Sequence record: NC_047815.1
DNA: 64,000 nucleotides
Strand: one strand, 5' to 3'
Below are positions 11,366 to 28,504 of the stretch, piece after piece. Positions within the stretch are counted from its first letter, which is position 1; every line of letters starts with the position of its first letter. The notes beneath the pieces were generated by a model, which saw nothing but the letters and a program-made list of their open reading frames with translations, did not search any database and was not told the origin of the DNA. The position numbers and the translations under genes were made by a program.

Positions 11366-12079
11366 ATGATCACTACCCAGCAAGTTGAGAAACGTCTGGG
11401 GCAGGTGAATTTCACACAGTTCAACCGCCCAACCGAAACAGAAATTAAAGCTATAAATCTCGAAGGCCGAAGTCGCATCTTGAAAAATGCTGAACACGAT
11501 GGTCTTTGCGAACGAAGTGATAAATACTTTGAATTCTGCTGGATGACCGTTGGTCGGTTCTGTAGTCAGAGCTACAACGCTGTTGAAATCGCGTATCTTG
11601 TAGGCATGCAACCTATCAATGTTGCCGCTGCTATACAACAATACGGGCACGATTGGACTTATCGCCTGTTCACGTTGAAACGATTTGTTGGGGTTGATCG
11701 TGGTCGTCATACCATTATGCAATCAACTAACTGGTTCTGGTCTCCTGCTGAGATCGCGCATCGTGTTAATGACGTTATCTGCAACACGCGTCAGGCAAAA
11801 CTGTTGCATAAAATTCGCAACAACCGTATTGAGGAAATCAAAACAGTTCTCAATGCAGCACCTTACGCTATCTTGAGTCTGATCGATCAAAAGCGTGTGC
11901 CAGTATTTCGTGATTGTCGCTGGAAACAAGAGGCGAATCGTCCGAAAGGAAATGCTATGACGGTAAAGCGTCGAATTGATCACGAACTTGCGGTGTGTAG
12001 CGCACCTCGTGACGTAACGCTACCACGTCCTACTGTTTTCACTCGCCGTGACGGCAGCAGCTACCAATACAATAGTTAA
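11366..12079 (+). CDS. hypothetical protein, possible HTH
   Basis: AGGA RBS; NAVEIAYLVGMQPINVAAAI resembles a helix-turn-helix. Confidence 0.6.
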   Translation: MITTQQVEKRLGQVNFTQFNRPTETEIKAINLEGRSRILKNAEHDGLCERSDKYFEFCWMTVGRFCSQSYNAVEIAYLVGMQPINVAAAIQQYGHDWTYRLFTLKRFVGVDRGRHTIMQSTNWFWSPAEIAHRVNDVICNTRQAKLLHKIRNNRIEEIKTVLNAAPYAILSLIDQKRVPVFRDCRWKQEANRPKGNAMTVKRRIDHELAVCSAPRDVTLPRPTVFTRRDGSSYQYNS

Positions 12080-12084
12080 AAATT

Positions 12085-12092
12085 CTGTAAAT
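12085..12092 (+). promoter_or_regulatory. putative phage promoter CTGTAAAT upstream of cmoA-like gene
   Basis: Recurrent + strand motif, intergenic here. Confidence 0.6.
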
Positions 12093-12157
12093 TAATTCTG
12101 AATATGGTAATTAAGAGAGGTCAAAACTAATGGCCTCTCTTTTATAGGACAGAAACC

Positions 12158-12931
12158 ATGAACGTAGATAAAACAATGCCACAAGGCAAATGGGAGTTTG
12201 ATGAACCCGTAGCCGCTGTGTTCGACAGCATGTTGCAAAACAGTATTCCTTCTTATGATCGTATGCGTGACCTGACATATCGTATCGGTCGCAAGTTCGT
12301 GCAGCCTGGAACAACCATCGTTGACTTAGGCGCATCGCTGGGTCGTGCCATTGAACCGTTTGCCGAAGAGTTCGGTGCGTATCTCGCGTCACCGCATCAC
12401 GTTAATGGCGAAGTCAGTGACATTATCGAAACAGGCAACTACTATGATCTGTACGAAGTCAGTGATCCGATGCGCAGCCGTCTCGTTCAAAACGAAGTGT
12501 TGCAATCCGTACGCGCTGAACTCCGTGATGAAAGCCTTGTAGATGTGCAAGACTTTGCTCGTAATAACGGTGCTGGTTGTAGCCTGATTCTCAGCGTGTT
12601 GACTCTCCAGTTCACTCCGCTTGAGCATCGCCAGCGCATCCTTGATCGTATCAGCAACAGTCTCAACGCTGGTGGTGCTTTCATTCTTGTTGAGAAAGTA
12701 TTGGGTGATTCGCACGCGCTTGATGACATGATGGTCGATGTGTACTACAGCATGAAAGGCGATAACGGTTATACCAAAGAAGCCATTGCCGCCAAGCGCA
12801 AGTCATTAGAAGGTGTATTGGTTCCGATGAAAGCAAGTTGGAACGAAGAACTGTTGCGTCAAGCAGGCTTCCGTCATGTTGATTGCTTCTATCGTGACTT
12901 GAACTTCGCTGGTTGGATTGCAGTTAAATAA
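12158..12931 (+). CDS. cmoA: carboxy-S-adenosyl-L-methionine synthase (CmoA-like)
   Basis: End-to-end match to the CmoA pattern: WEFDEPVAAVFDSMLQNSIPSY, VQPGTTIVDLGASLG, LTLQF, GGAFILVEK, KGDNGY...KRKSLEGVL, LRQAGF, LNFAGWIAVK. Confidence 0.85.
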   Translation: MNVDKTMPQGKWEFDEPVAAVFDSMLQNSIPSYDRMRDLTYRIGRKFVQPGTTIVDLGASLGRAIEPFAEEFGAYLASPHHVNGEVSDIIETGNYYDLYEVSDPMRSRLVQNEVLQSVRAELRDESLVDVQDFARNNGAGCSLILSVLTLQFTPLEHRQRILDRISNSLNAGGAFILVEKVLGDSHALDDMMVDVYYSMKGDNGYTKEAIAAKRKSLEGVLVPMKASWNEELLRQAGFRHVDCFYRDLNFAGWIAVK

Positions 12932-12940
12932 GGAGCGGTT

Positions 12941-13816
12941 ATGAGTACCACAGCCGCAATGCGCGAGAAGATTCGTGCTGGTGTAATCGAAAGTCACAAC
13001 AAGCCTGTTGATATGCGACAGGCTTTGATGGACACGCTTGCTTGGATTCCTAAAGACGACCAAGTGACTGTGTTTATGTCTGGTGGCATTGATAGTCATG
13101 CATGTTTATTTGCTGCTATTGATCTCGGACTGAAAGTTAACGTGCTTTCTTTTACGCTTGATACGCATGAATCAGCAGACTTTAAATCAGCACGTCACGC
13201 AGCAGAAGTGTTTGACCTCAAGTTTATCCCTATCGTGTTGCCTACCAACGAGCAACATTTAAAAAGCTGGGTTAAGTTTGCAGTCCACAAGTTGGGTCTA
13301 TCAAACAAAAGTGAAATCGAATGTAGCTGGCCGTTGTATTCAGCTATCCGTGCGCTTGAGCAGATGGGTGAGACCAAGCATATCGTGTTAGGTCTTGGTG
13401 GTGACAGCTACTTCCTCATGGCCAAGAGCGCATCAATGCACTGCAAAGACCTTGTGCTTGAGCAGCGACGCAAAGCTACTCGCCGTGTACTTAGTCAGAA
13501 CACACTGGTAAAGCGTGAGGCATTCGCACGAGGCATCTACGCACACCTGCCCTACTACGAGCTTGGTCGTGTGTATGCTGAATTGCAGATGGAAACAGAC
13601 TTCAAGAAGATCAACAGTCCTCAGAAGTCTTTCTACAATCAAGCATTTCCTGAATACCGCAAGCGTTGTAAAGTACGTGGTCATCAGAACTTCCAGCTGG
13701 GCGACACCAACATCAGCGGTATCTTTAGCGAAGTGTTGTTGAAGTCTGATTGGAACACAAGAAATTTAAAGGCCATTACAGGCATTTATAATGATGTAGC
13801 CGCTGGAATTATTTAA
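12941..13816 (+). CDS. asparagine-synthetase-like ATP-dependent amide ligase lacking the glutaminase domain
   Basis: PP-loop FMSGGIDS, LSFTL, D...ARHAAEVFDL, VLGLGGDSYF (cf. SGEGADELF), HLPY, NFQLG; only 291 aa. Confidence 0.75.
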   Translation: MSTTAAMREKIRAGVIESHNKPVDMRQALMDTLAWIPKDDQVTVFMSGGIDSHACLFAAIDLGLKVNVLSFTLDTHESADFKSARHAAEVFDLKFIPIVLPTNEQHLKSWVKFAVHKLGLSNKSEIECSWPLYSAIRALEQMGETKHIVLGLGGDSYFLMAKSASMHCKDLVLEQRRKATRRVLSQNTLVKREAFARGIYAHLPYYELGRVYAELQMETDFKKINSPQKSFYNQAFPEYRKRCKVRGHQNFQLGDTNISGIFSEVLLKSDWNTRNLKAITGIYNDVAAGII

Positions 13817-13834
13817 TTTCCGCCTACACGAAAA

Positions 13835-13842
13835 CTGTAAAT
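13835..13842 (+). promoter_or_regulatory. putative phage promoter CTGTAAAT upstream of the DPA-repeat peptide gene
   Basis: AAAACTGTAAATA, intergenic. Confidence 0.6.
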
Positions 13843-13912
13843 ACTAATTTGAGAAAGCATATTATTTGTAGACTCAAGTACATACCATCAATCCTATAAC
13901 AGGAGTTATACC

Positions 13913-14047
13913 ATGCGTAATCGTTTTGATCCAGCAGCTAAAGCAGACCCAGCAATCGTTGACCCAGCTGATCCAGCAATGTTTGATCCAGCAGACCCTG
14001 CTGATCCAGCGATGATCGACCCAGCTGATCCAGCAGCTCGCTTCTAA
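13913..14047 (+). CDS. 44-aa Asp-Pro-Ala repeat peptide (absent from the ORF track)
   Basis: MRNRFDPAAKADPAIVDPADPAMFDPADPADPAMIDPADPAARF; AGGAG RBS at 13901; synonymous codon variation between repeat units; own promoter-like motif and terminator. Confidence 0.85.
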   Translation: MRNRFDPAAKADPAIVDPADPAMFDPADPADPAMIDPADPAARF

Positions 14048-14059
14048 GCAAAAACCCAG

Positions 14060-14085
14060 AGGGTGGCCAATCGGCTGCCCTTTTT
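14060..14085 (+). terminator. intrinsic terminator
   Basis: AGGGTGGCC-AATC-GGCTGCCCT followed by TTTT. Confidence 0.75.
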
Positions 14086-14103
14086 CTTGTCAGAGGTTAT
14101 GTC

Positions 14104-14745
14104 ATGACTACACAACTCGTTAACAACATCCCACTAATCCATACCCAACGTTGCCACAATGTCAGCAGCGTAGACCACACACCGTTATTTGTCTATCACA
14201 ACTTCTTTTCTGACGACATGTGTGCCGCACTGATAGCAGAAGCACAGCAGTACCTCGAACCAAGCCGTGTAGGCGGTCCAAACAATACAACTAAAATCGA
14301 CCGTTCGGTACGCAGTTCCAGCACAGCTATGTTAAGCGAAGTGAGCACAGCGCCTTGTGTGCTTGAAGCAATCAAACTGATCGACCTTGCTTATGGTCAT
14401 CCTCATCTGAACAGCAACCCACTCCAGTTCAATCAATATCAAACCGGTGAAGAATTCAAAGCGCATCATGATTGGCATAATCCTGAAACGCAGCAAGCAC
14501 GTATTGAACTCGAAGGTCAACGTACCTGGACTTTCTTGATGTATCTCAACGAGGACTTCGATGGCGGCACGACAGTGTTCCCTCATCTGGACATTGAAAT
14601 CATGCCTCAACGTGGTATGCTTGTTGCGTGGAACAATCTGAATGCAGATGGTAGTGTTAACATCGCAACAGAACACGCATCCCAGCCGGTAGTACGTGGT
14701 ACAAAGTACATGATGACCAAGTGGTTTAAAAACAAAGTTTTATAA
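14104..14745 (+). CDS. 2OG-Fe(II) oxygenase, prolyl-4-hydroxylase-like
   Basis: RSSSTA, LQFNQYQTGEEFKAHHD (HxD), RTWTFLMYLNEDFDGGTTVFP, distal H in TEHASQPV, TKYMMTKW. Confidence 0.9.
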   Translation: MTTQLVNNIPLIHTQRCHNVSSVDHTPLFVYHNFFSDDMCAALIAEAQQYLEPSRVGGPNNTTKIDRSVRSSSTAMLSEVSTAPCVLEAIKLIDLAYGHPHLNSNPLQFNQYQTGEEFKAHHDWHNPETQQARIELEGQRTWTFLMYLNEDFDGGTTVFPHLDIEIMPQRGMLVAWNNLNADGSVNIATEHASQPVVRGTKYMMTKWFKNKVL

Positions 14746-14750
14746 TACAT

Positions 14751-14772
14751 GTGGGTGGCTTAGGCTGCCCAC
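14751..14772 (+). terminator. hairpin / probable terminator
   Basis: GTGGGTGGC-TTAG-GCTGCCCAC just after the oxygenase stop. Confidence 0.6.
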
Positions 14773-14794
14773 GGTTGTGTCTGTGTCAAGAAAA

Positions 14795-14802
14795 CTGTAA
14801 AT
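14795..14802 (+). promoter_or_regulatory. putative phage promoter CTGTAAAT
   Basis: AAAACTGTAAATA, intergenic after a hairpin. Confidence 0.6.
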
Positions 14803-14828
14803 AAATAGAAACACACTAGGACAATCTC

Positions 14829-15071
14829 ATGCTATTCTTAGCCTGCCTTTTCTACGCGCTGTTTGGCCTGCTGTTTGTAGCAGGTATGCTGGTAACTTTA
14901 GGTGGCTACTTTATTAAACATGGCTATCACAACTTACTCAAATATGAATTACCCGACGACTTTGAGGAAGTAATCACAAAGCGTTGGTCAGCAATGGTTA
15001 CTGTGCTTGGTGTTTTATGTTTGGTGTGCCACTTGCTGTACACCATCTTCTGGTACTTAGGCACTCATTAG
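14829..15071 (+). CDS. small two-TM membrane protein
   Basis: Two hydrophobic segments; AGGA RBS. Confidence 0.7.
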   Translation: MLFLACLFYALFGLLFVAGMLVTLGGYFIKHGYHNLLKYELPDDFEEVITKRWSAMVTVLGVLCLVCHLLYTIFWYLGTH

Positions 15072-16047: not shown

Positions 16048-16506
16048 ATGAGTCCGTTTTCAATACTACAACGTCAGGTTGTCCGAGCCTTAACCGGAGA
16101 AGCCAACCTTGAACCAGAAGAACGTGCGTTGTTTGACTGGCGATTCGTAGTAGACGTTGGTGGCAAGTTTTATACAGTCGGTAAAACTGGTGCAAACACT
16201 GTGTATTACATGACACCAGAAATGACTGAGCCAGTACCGTGCTATCCAGACCAGATAGCTGAAATCATTACAGGTTGGGCCAAGCCTAAATATATCAGTT
16301 ATATGATTTGCCACAAACGTTTCGATAACGTCAAGCTGGACAATATCAAAACTGAACAGGAAGCCTTGCGTAAGGTGCCTAAGACGTTTCATGACAAGAC
16401 GTTTATTGTTGGTATCACGTCGAAAGGCAAGCGCCACAAGCTGTATCGTCTGCAAGCTGGACTTAACGGTAATGCCTGGGTACCAGTCAGCGAAGAATCA
16501 GAATAG
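16048..16506 (+). CDS. hypothetical protein
   Basis: 152 aa, flanked by promoter-like motif and terminator. Confidence 0.7.
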   Translation: MSPFSILQRQVVRALTGEANLEPEERALFDWRFVVDVGGKFYTVGKTGANTVYYMTPEMTEPVPCYPDQIAEIITGWAKPKYISYMICHKRFDNVKLDNIKTEQEALRKVPKTFHDKTFIVGITSKGKRHKLYRLQAGLNGNAWVPVSEESE

Positions 16507-16589: not shown

Positions 16590-17429
16590 ATGCCTATTCT
16601 AGTTAGCCCCGTCCGCTATCAGGGCTCGAAGCGAAGTCTTATGTCTCAGATTAAAAGTTTGGCGCCAGCAGACTGCCCGCGCATGATTGATGCTTTTGGT
16701 GGTTCAGCAACGGTTGTGTGTAACATGAATCAGCCACATCGTATCTATTGCGAAAGCCACCAGCATGTATACAACATCATCAAGGTGTTGTGTGACGTTG
16801 AGCCTTCTCAGACAATGGCAAAGATTCGCCGGCTTGTACGACAATGGTGTTTGACCAACAGCAATCCCGATCAATACTTTGCCTTTCGTGCGCACGCCAA
16901 TCAGCGACGTGATCCGCTTATGTACTACATCTTGCATCGTCATGCACACAGCAACCTGATTCGCTTCAATCAAAGTGGTGAGTTCAATACACCGTTCGGC
17001 AATCGTGGTCTGATTGGCAGATGGGAAGAGCTTGAGCGTGAGATCTACCAGTTCTATTATGCGATGCAAGGCGTGCGCCTTGTGAACATGCGCTATGGTG
17101 ACTTGCTCAACAAAGTAAAGCCGAGCCTGAACCAGAACACGTTCATCTACTTTGACCCGCCCTATCTTGCATCAGGCGCTAACGCCTATGACGGTTGGTC
17201 AGTTGAGCTTGAACTCAAGTTACTGCGTAACCTCGAACACCTGACCAGTATGGGTGTACGCTGGATGTTGAGTAACGTTGTGCGTCACAGACACTTTGAA
17301 AACAAGTTGCTTGAGCAGTGGCTGCGCAAGAACAAGATTCGTGTTGTCTATCCTCAAAAGAGCTATGCGTTTGCTAATGCCCAACAGGACAGCCACAGCA
17401 CCATAGAAATCATCGCGATGAACTATTGA
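16590..17429 (+). CDS. dam: DNA adenine methyltransferase (D12/Dam class)
   Basis: SPVRYQGSKRSL, DAFGGSATV, RFNQSGEFNTPFG, FIYFDPPY, WMLSN; target sequence not determinable from sequence alone. Confidence 0.85.
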   Translation: MPILVSPVRYQGSKRSLMSQIKSLAPADCPRMIDAFGGSATVVCNMNQPHRIYCESHQHVYNIIKVLCDVEPSQTMAKIRRLVRQWCLTNSNPDQYFAFRAHANQRRDPLMYYILHRHAHSNLIRFNQSGEFNTPFGNRGLIGRWEELEREIYQFYYAMQGVRLVNMRYGDLLNKVKPSLNQNTFIYFDPPYLASGANAYDGWSVELELKLLRNLEHLTSMGVRWMLSNVVRHRHFENKLLEQWLRKNKIRVVYPQKSYAFANAQQDSHSTIEIIAMNY

Positions 17430-25705: not shown

Positions 25706-26386
25706 ATGTCAACCACCAAAGTGAAAGTTAAAAAGAAAACTGGTAAAGGTGCTATTTCGCTCAAAGATCTAAAAGACGTAAAGCAACTTAAAGGTGCATC
25801 GTATAACCCACGCATCATTACCGATCGTCGTCTCAAAGACCTCGAAAAGTCTTTAGGTGCATTCGGTGACCTGTCAGGTGTTGTGTTCAACAACAACGTA
25901 AACAGTGGCGTGATGATTTCAGGCCACCAGCGTATCAGCAGTATCAAAGGTTGGAAGACACGTATTGAAGTGCAGCAGACCTCAGATGATCATGGCACTG
26001 TTGGTCTTGGCTTTATTCATGCTACCAGCCCTAAGGGCAAAAAGATTAGCATCCCACTGCGTGTTGTAGATTGGTCAGACAAGAAAGCAGAGTTTGCTGC
26101 TAACATTGCCGCCAACGCACACGGCGGTGAGTTTGATAACAAGAAACTTGCCAAGCTGGTTGAAAAGCTGGACATGAGCAAGATGCCAAGCGCCCTGATT
26201 GGTCTTGACCCGCTTCATATTCGCGGTCTGCAACAAAAGCTGATCAAAGATGGTGTGCCGCCAGAAAAAGCTGGTCGTACTACTGGTACCATGAACGGTG
26301 CAAGCGGTCAGTTCAACGAAGCAACAGTTGAAGACGTTGGTTCGGGTATGCAGCACAAGTGCCCACGTTGTAACTTCTCCTGGTAA
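25706..26386 (+). CDS. ParB/Srx-like N-terminal domain protein with C-terminal Cys motif
   Basis: LKGASYNPR, SLGAFG, MISGHQR, AANAHGGEFD; terminal HKCPRCNFSW. Confidence 0.75.
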   Translation: MSTTKVKVKKKTGKGAISLKDLKDVKQLKGASYNPRIITDRRLKDLEKSLGAFGDLSGVVFNNNVNSGVMISGHQRISSIKGWKTRIEVQQTSDDHGTVGLGFIHATSPKGKKISIPLRVVDWSDKKAEFAANIAANAHGGEFDNKKLAKLVEKLDMSKMPSALIGLDPLHIRGLQQKLIKDGVPPEKAGRTTGTMNGASGQFNEATVEDVGSGMQHKCPRCNFSW

Positions 26387-26395
26387 GGAACGTAC

Positions 26396-28504
26396 ATGCT
26401 TATCAAGCCACCTACTATGGCAGAGATTAACGCCCTGAAAAAGACTTGGACGGGCATGAGTTTCTTTGCTGGTTGTGGTGGTTCAAGCACGGGTCATAAA
26501 ATGAGCGGTATCGACATTCTTGTATCAAACGAGTTTGTCGATATTGCCCGCGACACCTATGCACTGAATCATCCAACAACAAAAGTGCTTGGTCAGGACA
26601 TTCGACGTCTTGACCCGAAAAAGATTCTGAATTTTAAAGGACTGAGTGTCGGCGAACTTGATTTGCTTGACGGCAGTCCTCCTTGCTTTCTCAAAGATAC
26701 CTTGATTCATACAGCAACCGGTATGCGCTACATCGACGCTATTCAAGCTGGTGATCTTGTGATGACGCATGAAGGTCGTTATCGTCGTGTTGTAGAACCA
26801 ATGCAGCGTCCGTATACTGGACCTATGCATCGCATTCAGACAACTATCGGTGAGAACGTAGCAACACCTGAGCACCCGTTCTATGTGCGTCGCATGAATG
26901 GCGGTGTGCTTGGTGCACCTGAATGGATTGATGCTCGTGATGTTCGTGCCGGTGATCGTGTTGCTACACCAACAGCAAGCCATGCGTCAGCCGCTAGCAA
27001 TGAGTCTAATCCTGTACTTGCTGCTTGGATGGAGATTCCTGAGTTCTGGTGGCTGTGTGGTCATTGGGTATCGAACGGTACTATCGAACAGGTCGGTCGC
27101 TATCGTGGTATCAAGTTCACAACACCGCGTGGGGGCCGCGCTAACCAACTGCTTGAGCAGGCTGTTGATACCTTAGGGTTCAGCACTATTCAAACAGCTC
27201 ATCAGACTGGTCAGTACATTGAACGTTTCATGATGGACGACACCTTGTTATCGTTCCTTGAGCGTTTCCTCACTGACACTGAATATGCACGTCAGATCCC
27301 AGGCACGGTGTTCCATCTTGACTCGTTCCTAAAGCGTGAGTTTATTTACGGCTTCCAGTCACGTTGTGCGTCTACCTCTTATGGTAAGACGCTGGTGGTG
27401 CAGACGCGTACCGCTCGATTCATGACTGGCATGAAATATCTGATTGCCTCCGCGTTTGGTTGCCCGCTGTTCGATCTCAGCCCGAACGTGACAACGGAAG
27501 AGATTCCACCTCATAGCTTTACGTTCCGTCCTGACTCAGACTTTGCGCAGCATGTTCGCTACACCACAGTGTTCTATCTTGATGATGCCGATCGTGGTTT
27601 CATTCGTGATGATACTGGTCACTTGTGGGTTGATGTTCTTGCCAACAACACGTCCGAAGTTGATACCGCAGTGTATAACTTTAGCGTAGCAGAGGACGAG
27701 ACCTACGTTGCCAACAACACTGTGGTGCACAACTGCAAAGGCTTCTCAACGTCTGGTGTGCAGCAAGATGGCTGGGGCAAAGAGGTCAAGTACAGCGAGA
27801 ACATCTATCAGCAGGTCGATGACTTGTTTGATGAGTTCTGCCGTATGCTGGGCGGTATCATGCCCAAGACCTTCACAGCAGAAAACGTTAGCGGTCTTGT
27901 TAAAGGTGCGTCGAAAGGTTACTTCCTTGAGATCATGAAAACGTTTGACGAGCTGGGCTATTATGTACGTGCACCGATACTCAACAGCAGTTGGTTAGGT
28001 GTTCCGCAGTCGCGTGAGCGTATCATCTTTATGGGTGTACGCAAAGACATAGCGAAAAAGCTCAAGCTACCTCAGAACTCTCAAGCTGTGCCAAGTGTTG
28101 TTCCGCAAGCAACACAAACAATGTTGGCTGATGCCCTGCCTCACATAGCAGGCTACAAGTCAACGCAGAAAGAGATCATCAAGTACAAGCCAGCAACAAA
28201 CGGTCCGATGCCAACAATCACAGCGGCAGATGCCATTGCTTATGAGACAGCACGATTCTCATCGGCAGGGTTTATCGAACTGCTTGACGGTACGAGGCGC
28301 AAGCTGACCATTGATGAACTGATTGTTGTTTCAGGCATGCCGAGTGATTACAAACTGCTTGGTACGTTTGAGCAACAGTGGGAACGTCTGGGGCGTGTAT
28401 GCGTTCCAGCAATGACCCACAACGCGTCGAAGGCATTGATCGAGAACATCTTGATTCCGTATGCCCGTGCGCGTAAGAAACAGCCGGGAGAGATCTTCCG
28501 CTAG
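26396..28504 (+). CDS. C5-cytosine DNA methyltransferase family protein with intein; probable carboxymethyltransferase (motif X GR)
   Basis: Motif I FFAGCGG, motif IV GSPP|C (split by intein), VI AENVSG, VIII GVPQSRERI, IX RRKLTIDE, X WERLGRVCVP. Confidence 0.9.
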   Translation: MLIKPPTMAEINALKKTWTGMSFFAGCGGSSTGHKMSGIDILVSNEFVDIARDTYALNHPTTKVLGQDIRRLDPKKILNFKGLSVGELDLLDGSPPCFLKDTLIHTATGMRYIDAIQAGDLVMTHEGRYRRVVEPMQRPYTGPMHRIQTTIGENVATPEHPFYVRRMNGGVLGAPEWIDARDVRAGDRVATPTASHASAASNESNPVLAAWMEIPEFWWLCGHWVSNGTIEQVGRYRGIKFTTPRGGRANQLLEQAVDTLGFSTIQTAHQTGQYIERFMMDDTLLSFLERFLTDTEYARQIPGTVFHLDSFLKREFIYGFQSRCASTSYGKTLVVQTRTARFMTGMKYLIASAFGCPLFDLSPNVTTEEIPPHSFTFRPDSDFAQHVRYTTVFYLDDADRGFIRDDTGHLWVDVLANNTSEVDTAVYNFSVAEDETYVANNTVVHNCKGFSTSGVQQDGWGKEVKYSENIYQQVDDLFDEFCRMLGGIMPKTFTAENVSGLVKGASKGYFLEIMKTFDELGYYVRAPILNSSWLGVPQSRERIIFMGVRKDIAKKLKLPQNSQAVPSVVPQATQTMLADALPHIAGYKSTQKEIIKYKPATNGPMPTITAADAIAYETARFSSAGFIELLDGTRRKLTIDELIVVSGMPSDYKLLGTFEQQWERLGRVCVPAMTHNASKALIENILIPYARARKKQPGEIFR
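26684..27733 (+). mobile_element. intein (350 aa) with degenerate LAGLIDADG domain
   Basis: Starts CFLKDTLI, block B ATPEHPF, ends VYNFSVAEDETYVANNTVVHN followed by Cys (+1); blocks C/E-like LCGHWVSNG and FIYGFQSRC lack the catalytic acids. Confidence 0.92.

Follow-up and report, generated by a model that had tools for sequence, protein, structure and literature searches.

What does a peptide with exactly nine Asp-Pro-Ala (DPA) units do for a phage that encodes it between an amide ligase and a prolyl hydroxylase? The gene lies in a 64,000-nucleotide stretch, here called the window, of the 259.7-kb genome of Erwinia phage vB_EamM_Yoloswag (KY448244 / NC_047815); window positions 12000-15000 match that genome with 100% identity and the same coordinates. 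It occupies positions 13913-14047 of the plus strand (44 codons and a TAA stop codon), and a Shine-Dalgarno (SD) sequence AGGAG is found at 13901-13905 of the same strand, 7 nt upstream of the ATG. The peptide has a basic N-terminus, followed by the nine units in blocks spaced by two or three mostly hydrophobic or aromatic residues, and ends with Ala-Arg-Phe. Among the ORFs of at least 20 amino acids in the six frames of the window, it is the sole acid-Pro-dense one. An earlier note on this DNA had claimed a real coding gene with its own strong AGGAG ribosome-binding site. This is borne out by the ORF with its nine DPA units, by the SD sequence and by the purifying selection described below. 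The gene is not hidden, as the note had put it, since it is already annotated as gp18, a 'hypothetical protein', in both KY448244 and NC_047815.

Is this arrangement found in other phages? I gathered 13 distinct related loci by scans with the ligase and oxygenase queries, plus look-ups of ten oxygenase homologues with 53-98% identity. The order of ligase, peptide ORF and prolyl 4-hydroxylase (P4H) was the same in 13/13 readable loci, and each member of this P4H clade (44-100% identity) is preceded by a peptide ORF and a ligase gene. Conserved linkage of the peptide with the oxygenase had been set as a test beforehand, and it was found at every locus; the architecture is invariant. The peptide ORFs encode 34-54 amino acids, with DPA repeats in 12 loci and EPE repeats in the remaining one. 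The 12 DPA peptides have 7-11 units, whose blocks are spaced by 1-4 mostly hydrophobic or aromatic residues. Across the loci, the N-termini consist of only 3-5 variable non-repeat residues and the C-terminal residue is Phe, Ala or Met. Most of the 13 loci have an AGGAG or AAGGAG type of SD sequence, and a few have weaker purine-rich variants. In Erwinia phage Y3, a 49-aa ORF with 10 DPA units lies between the 'asparagine synthase' gene and the oxygenase gene, whose product is 65% identical to gp19 of Yoloswag. The EPE peptide belongs to one jumbo phage (L131 / L307), in which the position, the SD sequence and the terminator are kept. Thus, the acid-Pro-X pattern persists while the exact residues do not. 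No such peptide was found near bacterial and metagenomic P4Hs of up to 41% identity (159 loci) or near three distant viral P4Hs.

Searches made with the peptide itself returned little. A tblastn search of phages with the gp18 peptide gave no match because the low-complexity filter masks the query. A search for homologous proteins returned none with the single peptide and only the EPE peptide with a profile query. An exhaustive HMMER scan over 1.84 billion representatives brought up two eukaryote-like repeat proteins, both unrelated, and no DPA peptide; neither Pfam nor PHROGs returned a family. Matches to the pattern DPADPADPA in viral contigs were mostly in unrelated large proteins, and a C-terminal match in the L126 contig was attributed to chance. 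When the peptides were searched against the PDB, no match was significant and the best one was a designed (Asp-Hyp-Gly)10 collagen peptide (2KLW, E 0.5). EF-Tu was considered as a target of mimicry because bacterial P4Hs modify it (5V7Y and 4IW3 are among the fold matches of gp19), and was dropped because the same PDB search did not return it. No description of a three-gene module of ligase, peptide and P4H was found in the searched literature.

Is it the peptide or the DNA repeat that is maintained? When the nine units of gp18 were compared, 9/9 differences were at codon position 3. Across the DPA units of 12 genes, the differences at codon positions 1, 2 and 3 numbered 0, 0 and 144, respectively. 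Five close pairs of peptide genes differ by 46 synonymous and 7 non-synonymous codons, and indels between close genes are always of whole codons or whole units; for instance, the peptide genes of Yoloswag and of a relative with a 98% identical P4H differ by exactly one DPA unit. These codon comparisons show that gp18-type genes are under purifying selection, and they uphold the earlier claim of selection on the peptide rather than DNA slippage. Between Yoloswag and L316, non-synonymous codons amount to 2/43 in the peptide, 46/213 in the P4H and 42/291 in the ligase. By this measure, constraint is stronger on the peptide than on each of the two enzymes.

How is the gene expressed? The promoter-like motif noticed earlier at 13835 proved to be a recurrent phage motif, CTGTAAATA (13835-13843, plus strand), the first part of a conserved block that extends to about position 13860. 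It occurs 10 times in the window (7733, 10379, 13835, 14795, 16009, 16554, 25661, 30575, 33708, and 35013), each time on the plus strand and with a start codon 17-90 nt downstream. Only 0.56 copies would be expected by chance, and 0/100 shuffles reached 10. The copy upstream of the peptide gene is invariant in seven relatives whose flanking sequences have diverged. CTGTAAATA is probably a phage-specific promoter class. In L317 (2510-2530) and at the equivalent position of L318, a second copy lies between the first one and the peptide gene.

The predicted terminator near 14060 was likewise found, as a hairpin with a T-run at 14058-14083 of the plus strand (dG -17.6 kcal/mol), between gp18 and gp19. 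A GC-rich hairpin with a T-run separates the peptide and P4H genes in 13/13 loci, and the fold energies of these intergenic regions range from -13 to -25 kcal/mol. Another terminator-like hairpin follows the P4H gene at 14750-14773 (plus strand), and the next CTGTAAATA is at 14795. The two hairpins have nearly the same stem sequence (GGGTGGC...GCTGCCC). The gp19 ORF starts about 20 nt after the first hairpin, and no CTGTAAATA was found between the peptide and P4H genes. With a copy of the motif before the peptide gene and none before the P4H gene, gp18 and gp19 appear to form a single transcription unit that contains a terminator, presumably a leaky one. It is therefore doubtful that gp18 is monocistronic, as had been stated.

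The product of gp19 (14104-14745, plus strand) belongs to the collagen-type prolyl 4-hydroxylases (Pfam 2OG-FeII_Oxy_3, E 1.4e-15). Sequence matches in the PDB include the P4Hs of Bacillus anthracis, human, algae and virus PBCV-1, down to E 2.7e-20. An AF2 model (pLDDT 87) gave fold matches to P4Hs only, the top one being 3GZE (TM 0.79), an algal (Chlamydomonas) P4H holding a (Ser-Pro)5 peptide. His121, Asp123, His191 and Lys201 do not vary among 11 sequences. The His-x-Asp...His triad is followed by a Lys 10 residues after the distal His, the spacing with which enzymes of the P4H family bind iron (through the triad) and 2OG (through the lysine). Thus, the flanking oxygenase, earlier described as prolyl-hydroxylase-like, is a peptidyl prolyl 4-hydroxylase by sequence and fold, and its modelled fold matches those of peptidyl P4Hs that bind repeat peptides.

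What is the ligase on the other side? The gp17 gene (12941-13816, plus strand) encodes a PP-loop (SGGIDS) amide ligase, with Pfam QueC and Asn_synthase matches over its N-terminal part. A tblastn search matched it to the 'asparagine synthase' gene of Synechococcus phage S-B43, which is SpCmoY and is located between the S-B43 cmoA and cmoX genes. The two proteins are full-length homologues (BLASTP, 28% identity over 261 aa, E 2e-19), and the subclade of ligases to which gp17 belongs, subclade A, is about 25% identical to SpCmoY. As expected of a CmoY-type ligase (asparagine-synthetase-like and AMP-forming), gp17 has the PP-loop and is encoded beside a cmoA homologue, gp16. A match to the NCBIfam lasso-type macrolactam cyclase was weak (E 0.003, 16 bits versus a cut-off of 300) and does not indicate membership; the single-sequence AF2 model had a pLDDT of 46. 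In phage DNA, CmoX uses carboxy-SAM to make 5-carboxymethylcytosine, and CmoY joins glycine to this base (Yang et al., Nat Commun 2025, PMC12783734). The flanking enzyme had been called an Asp-activating amide ligase. It does belong to an amide-ligase family, and CmoY, its only characterised relative, acts on 5-carboxymethylcytosine in DNA.

Homologues of the other components of the Cmo system of S-B43 are also encoded in the window. The gp16 protein (12158-12931, plus strand) is a CmoA homologue of the carboxy-SAM synthase family, which matches E. coli CmoA (PDB 4GEK, E 5e-30) and TIGR00740 (E 2e-39, below the equivalog cut-off). The gp43 protein (26396-28504, plus strand) is a CmoX-like DNA cytosine C5 transferase (Pfam DNA_methylase, Hint and intein) whose best PDB match is SpCmoX (8YF3, E 1.6e-51). 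It has an SPPC motif at residues 94-97 and an Arg aligned to Arg350 of SpCmoX. A ParB-like gene, gp42 (25706-26386), precedes gp43, as PMC12783734 describes for CmoX, and a copy of CTGTAAATA precedes the pair. With CmoA, CmoX and CmoY homologues all in the window, the neighbourhood is first of all a DNA-hypermodification cluster.

Several features of these clusters may be recorded here. The intein of gp43 sits directly after the catalytic SPPC motif, and the C5 DNA methylase of the EPE jumbo phage (L307:1667-3964) also contains an intein (DNA_methylase-Hint-Intein-DNA_methylase). Just upstream of cmoA, the same phage has a chorismate mutase gene (CM_2, 88 aa; L307:3973-4239), which could supply prephenate for carboxy-SAM synthesis; the term is absent from the main text of PMC12783734. 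The gp24 protein of Yoloswag (16048-16506, plus strand; about 150 aa) matched no family; it is a companion of the cmo clusters in PaBG-like phages and, more broadly, in several phage lineages (L312:4464-4916, L130:8212-8670, and L131:7772-8212). The genes adjacent to CmoY depend on the ligase subclade and encode a DUF1611 protein, a family of about 205 aa, or the peptide and P4H (L139:4899-5975, L312:5753-6364, L132:6792-7415, and L128:7888-8496 for the adjacent genes). These subclade-specific neighbours may specify different hypermodifications.

Are the three genes inherited together? CmoA identity tracks the phage backbone (88% between Y3 and L132, 63% between L130 and PaBG). Despite their 88% identical CmoA, the ligases of Y3 and L132 are only 31% identical. 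The ligases fall into two subclades, about 30% identical to each other. Subclade A, which carries the peptide and P4H, includes those of Yoloswag, Y3, L130 and Sen-NF at 71-89% identity and that of L131 at 55-58%. The other subclade is the one found in Rivsvirus-type phages. At the same slot, Y3 has ligase A with the peptide and P4H and L132 has ligase B alone; neither peptide nor P4H is present in the L132-type phages. Judging from these identities, the ligase, peptide and P4H genes are co-inherited and move between phage backbones as a block. This triad fills exactly the CmoY slot of the CmoA/CmoX cluster in 8/13 loci. It is placed between cmoX and cmoA in L130 and L323, and after cmoX, the chorismate mutase gene and cmoA in L131.

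In the Sen-NF-like phages, the triad lies between RecA and replication genes, and neither CmoA nor CmoX was found within 10 kb on either side. They were not found in the Sen-NF record itself either (GenBank PV359490; L313, L325, and L326), which is weak evidence because the record is abnormal. Nearly every CDS in it directly adjoins the next, without intergenic bases, and it lacks small genes of its relatives, so that it looks like a concatenation of CDSs in which absences are unreliable. Sen-NF apparently lacks the peptide for this reason, and it was rejected as a peptide-free counter-example; its true relatives carry the peptide.

How might the three products work together? What I infer most strongly from the sequences is that the peptide would be a dedicated substrate of the co-transcribed P4H. 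The unit would consist of the promoter motif, an SD sequence, the peptide gene, a leaky intrinsic terminator, another SD sequence, the P4H gene and a final terminator. Because of the leaky terminator between the cistrons, the peptide is expected to be made in large excess over the P4H. The gp19 enzyme would hydroxylate the prolines of the peptide, a polyanionic and collagen-like X-Pro-Ala repeat, into an Asp-Hyp-Ala polymer, which would probably be extended and polyproline-II-like, and the hydroxylated peptide would then work with the co-inherited CmoY-type ATP-dependent ligase gp17. As a whole, this reading (translation of gp18, co-transcription with gp19, hydroxylation by the P4H and a product that works with the gp17 ligase) seems to me somewhat likelier to be true than false. 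The P4H could also have its main target elsewhere, such as a host protein, with the peptide serving as a modulator.

More tentatively, it is possible that the CmoY-type ligase uses the prolyl-hydroxylated, ribosomally made repeat peptide as its reaction partner, a proposal to which I would give rather less than an even chance. It could take two forms. The first would be a DNA hypermodification derived from the peptide, with either the whole peptide or an excised Hyp-containing unit grafted onto bases. The second would have the ligase retargeted from the DNA carboxymethyl handle to the Asp residues of the peptide, giving a new class of RiPPs (ribosomally made, modified peptides) in a lytic phage; the modified product would then be a free peptide, RiPP-like in a loose sense. 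Action of gp17 on the acidic side chains is slightly more likely, and grafting onto DNA less so. The former is favoured because the Asp side chain has the same -CH2-COOH group as the 5-carboxymethylcytosine handle, and the occurrence of the triad without nearby CmoA or CmoX in one lineage also points to the peptide as the target of the ligase. Against it, the EPE variant has Glu, which is not a carboxymethyl mimic, and the one relative of the ligase that has been characterised works on DNA (PMC12783734).

Other explanations have to be weighed against the joint reading. The ligase may simply keep the CmoY role on 5-carboxymethylcytosine, while the peptide and P4H supply or shape its amine partner, so that the hydroxylated peptide would be grafted by its N-terminus, or a small released Hyp-containing piece would be grafted onto the base. 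The triad replaces another CmoY subclade at the same cmo slot, and its filling of that slot in most of the loci argues that the ligase still serves DNA hypermodification and not the peptide. The location in L130 and L323, with cmoX on one side and cmoA on the other, the presence of all the pathway components in the window and the subclade-dependent accessory genes of CmoY fit as well, and according to PMC12783734 the amine substrates of the other ligase clusters are unidentified. I nevertheless regard it as unlikely. The only conserved amine of the peptide is its N-terminus, where the first residues vary, and there is no conserved peptidase in the module to release a piece. The demand for peptide would be large if the sites were as dense as in S-B43, in which 10% of C is modified (PMC12783734), and an appendage of 44 aa seems hard to fit with DNA packaging. 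The lineage with a triad and no nearby CmoA or CmoX also speaks against it. Could the peptide instead act as an acidic decoy, unmodified or merely hydroxylated, that mimics carboxylated DNA or a Pro-rich segment of the host and blocks a host defence or DNA-binding protein without involving the ligase? A strongly acidic repeat of 7-11 units suits multivalent binding better than a fixed fold. Inhibitors of modification-dependent restriction are common in phages whose DNA is modified, and the Sen-NF-like contig L327 has an Acb1-like (anti-CBASS) gene 7 kb upstream of its triad (L327:2903-3337). A decoy would leave the strict co-inheritance with the ligase unexplained, and searches of Pfam, PHROGs and the PDB did not link the peptide to the folds or families of known DNA mimics, which makes this a rather improbable role.

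Two further readings would deny the peptide any function. Translation of the Pro-rich ORF might control read-through of the terminator in cis, and hence the P4H, with a functionless product. A short ORF, an intrinsic terminator and a regulated gene in this order are the classic attenuator layout, which is seen at 13/13 loci. When 13895-14095 was folded, the MFE and centroid structures each retained the terminator, and no competing antiterminator was found. The stem starts 12-13 nt after the stop codon in L130 and L131 and 17-18 nt after it in Y3, L318 and L322, and in at least the latter three a terminating ribosome would probably not extend that far. The classic attenuator was rejected on these grounds. 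Moreover, Asp, Ala, the linkers and the C-terminal residues are preserved in addition to Pro, and the peptide is more constrained than the enzymes in the comparison with L316, so that a cis-acting leader is very improbable. Finally, the opposite strand might hold the gene, or the locus might be no gene at all but a non-coding 9-bp DNA repeat (a slippage array, a GATC cluster or a protein-binding site). In favour of such readings, GATC occurs six times within 135 bp (13928-14030), about 12 times the density of the window (3.6 per kb), and one antisense frame is open in all the relatives; Yoloswag encodes a Dam-like methylase, gp25 (16590-17429). Since GAT and GAC are about equally used in the DPA units, the GATC cluster is a by-product of GAT-CCN codon pairs. 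All the unit differences at position 3 of the plus frame fall on the first codon base of the open antisense frame, and the other antisense frames have stops in most relatives, so that an antisense ORF was rejected. The SD sequence and the ATG are conserved on the plus strand, and a non-coding or antisense element, which the comparisons between relatives contradict, is hardly credible.

The joint reading, in which the hydroxylated peptide works with the ligase, can be compared with known systems. In the main text of PMC12783734, the Cmo clusters include no peptide gene, oxygenase or hydroxylase, and 'peptide' occurs only in a cited title, twice. In Yoloswag, the peptide gene directly follows the CmoY homologue. 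The Yoloswag ligase falls in a subclade distinct from that of S-B43 and invariably accompanied by the peptide and P4H, and triads are also found at a distance from CmoA and CmoX. With the collagen-type P4Hs (vCPH of PBCV-1, 5C5T; Chlamydomonas, 3GZE; B. anthracis), gp19 shares the fold and the catalytic residues. PBCV-1 is also alike in being a virus that encodes both a hydroxylase and a Pro-containing repeat, and its P4H is said to hydroxylate Pro-rich repeat peptides resembling viral ORFs. In contrast to the known P4H-repeat systems, the candidate substrate here is a dedicated ORF of 34-54 aa, probably co-transcribed with the P4H gene, in a phage with a bacterial host. No collagen triple helix is expected because the acid-Pro-Ala/Glu repeat lacks a Gly at every third residue. 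I know of no earlier pair of a dedicated peptide and a prolyl hydroxylase in a bacteriophage.

The earlier note had seen the layout of a RiPP cluster. A small repeat peptide beside an ATP-dependent, carboxylate-activating enzyme and a 2OG oxygenase does resemble a multi-core RiPP cluster; the precursor gene is adjacent to and co-inherited with the candidate tailoring enzymes in 13/13 loci, and the terminator after it would give an excess of precursor. This part of the claim stands. No leader was found on the peptide. Scans of gp17, gp19 and the neighbours gave no match to an RRE or PqqD-type domain, and there was no dedicated protease or exporter domain among the conserved neighbours, which differ between lineages. 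For these reasons the system is classed only as one that works like a RiPP. A ribosomal peptide combined with carboxy-SAM and carboxymethyl-cytosine chemistry has, to my knowledge, been described only for the microcin C-like antibiotic of Bacillus amyloliquefaciens. This system reportedly depends on MccB, an adenylyltransferase of the ThiF type, and on a C-terminal Asn of its peptide. The DPA and EPE peptides do not end in Asn, and no MccB/ThiF-type Pfam domain was found in the scanned neighbours. The peptidyl carboxymethyl-cytidine antibiotic is referred to here through the citation of Serebryakova et al. 2016 in PMC12783734.

What does the module mean for these phages? Standard protein searches miss such ORFs, none of those made here having returned a member of the DPA family, and yet very short low-complexity phage ORFs can rank among the most constrained genes of their neighbourhood. 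The prediction can be checked by mass spectrometry, as +16 Da ladders on the 4.6-kDa peptide and through the nature of the cytosine adduct in the DNA of Yoloswag or Y3. The published Cmo pathway leaves open the amines of many ligase clades, and the module described here gives one of these clades two co-inherited partners, a repeat peptide and the hydroxylase that may modify it.
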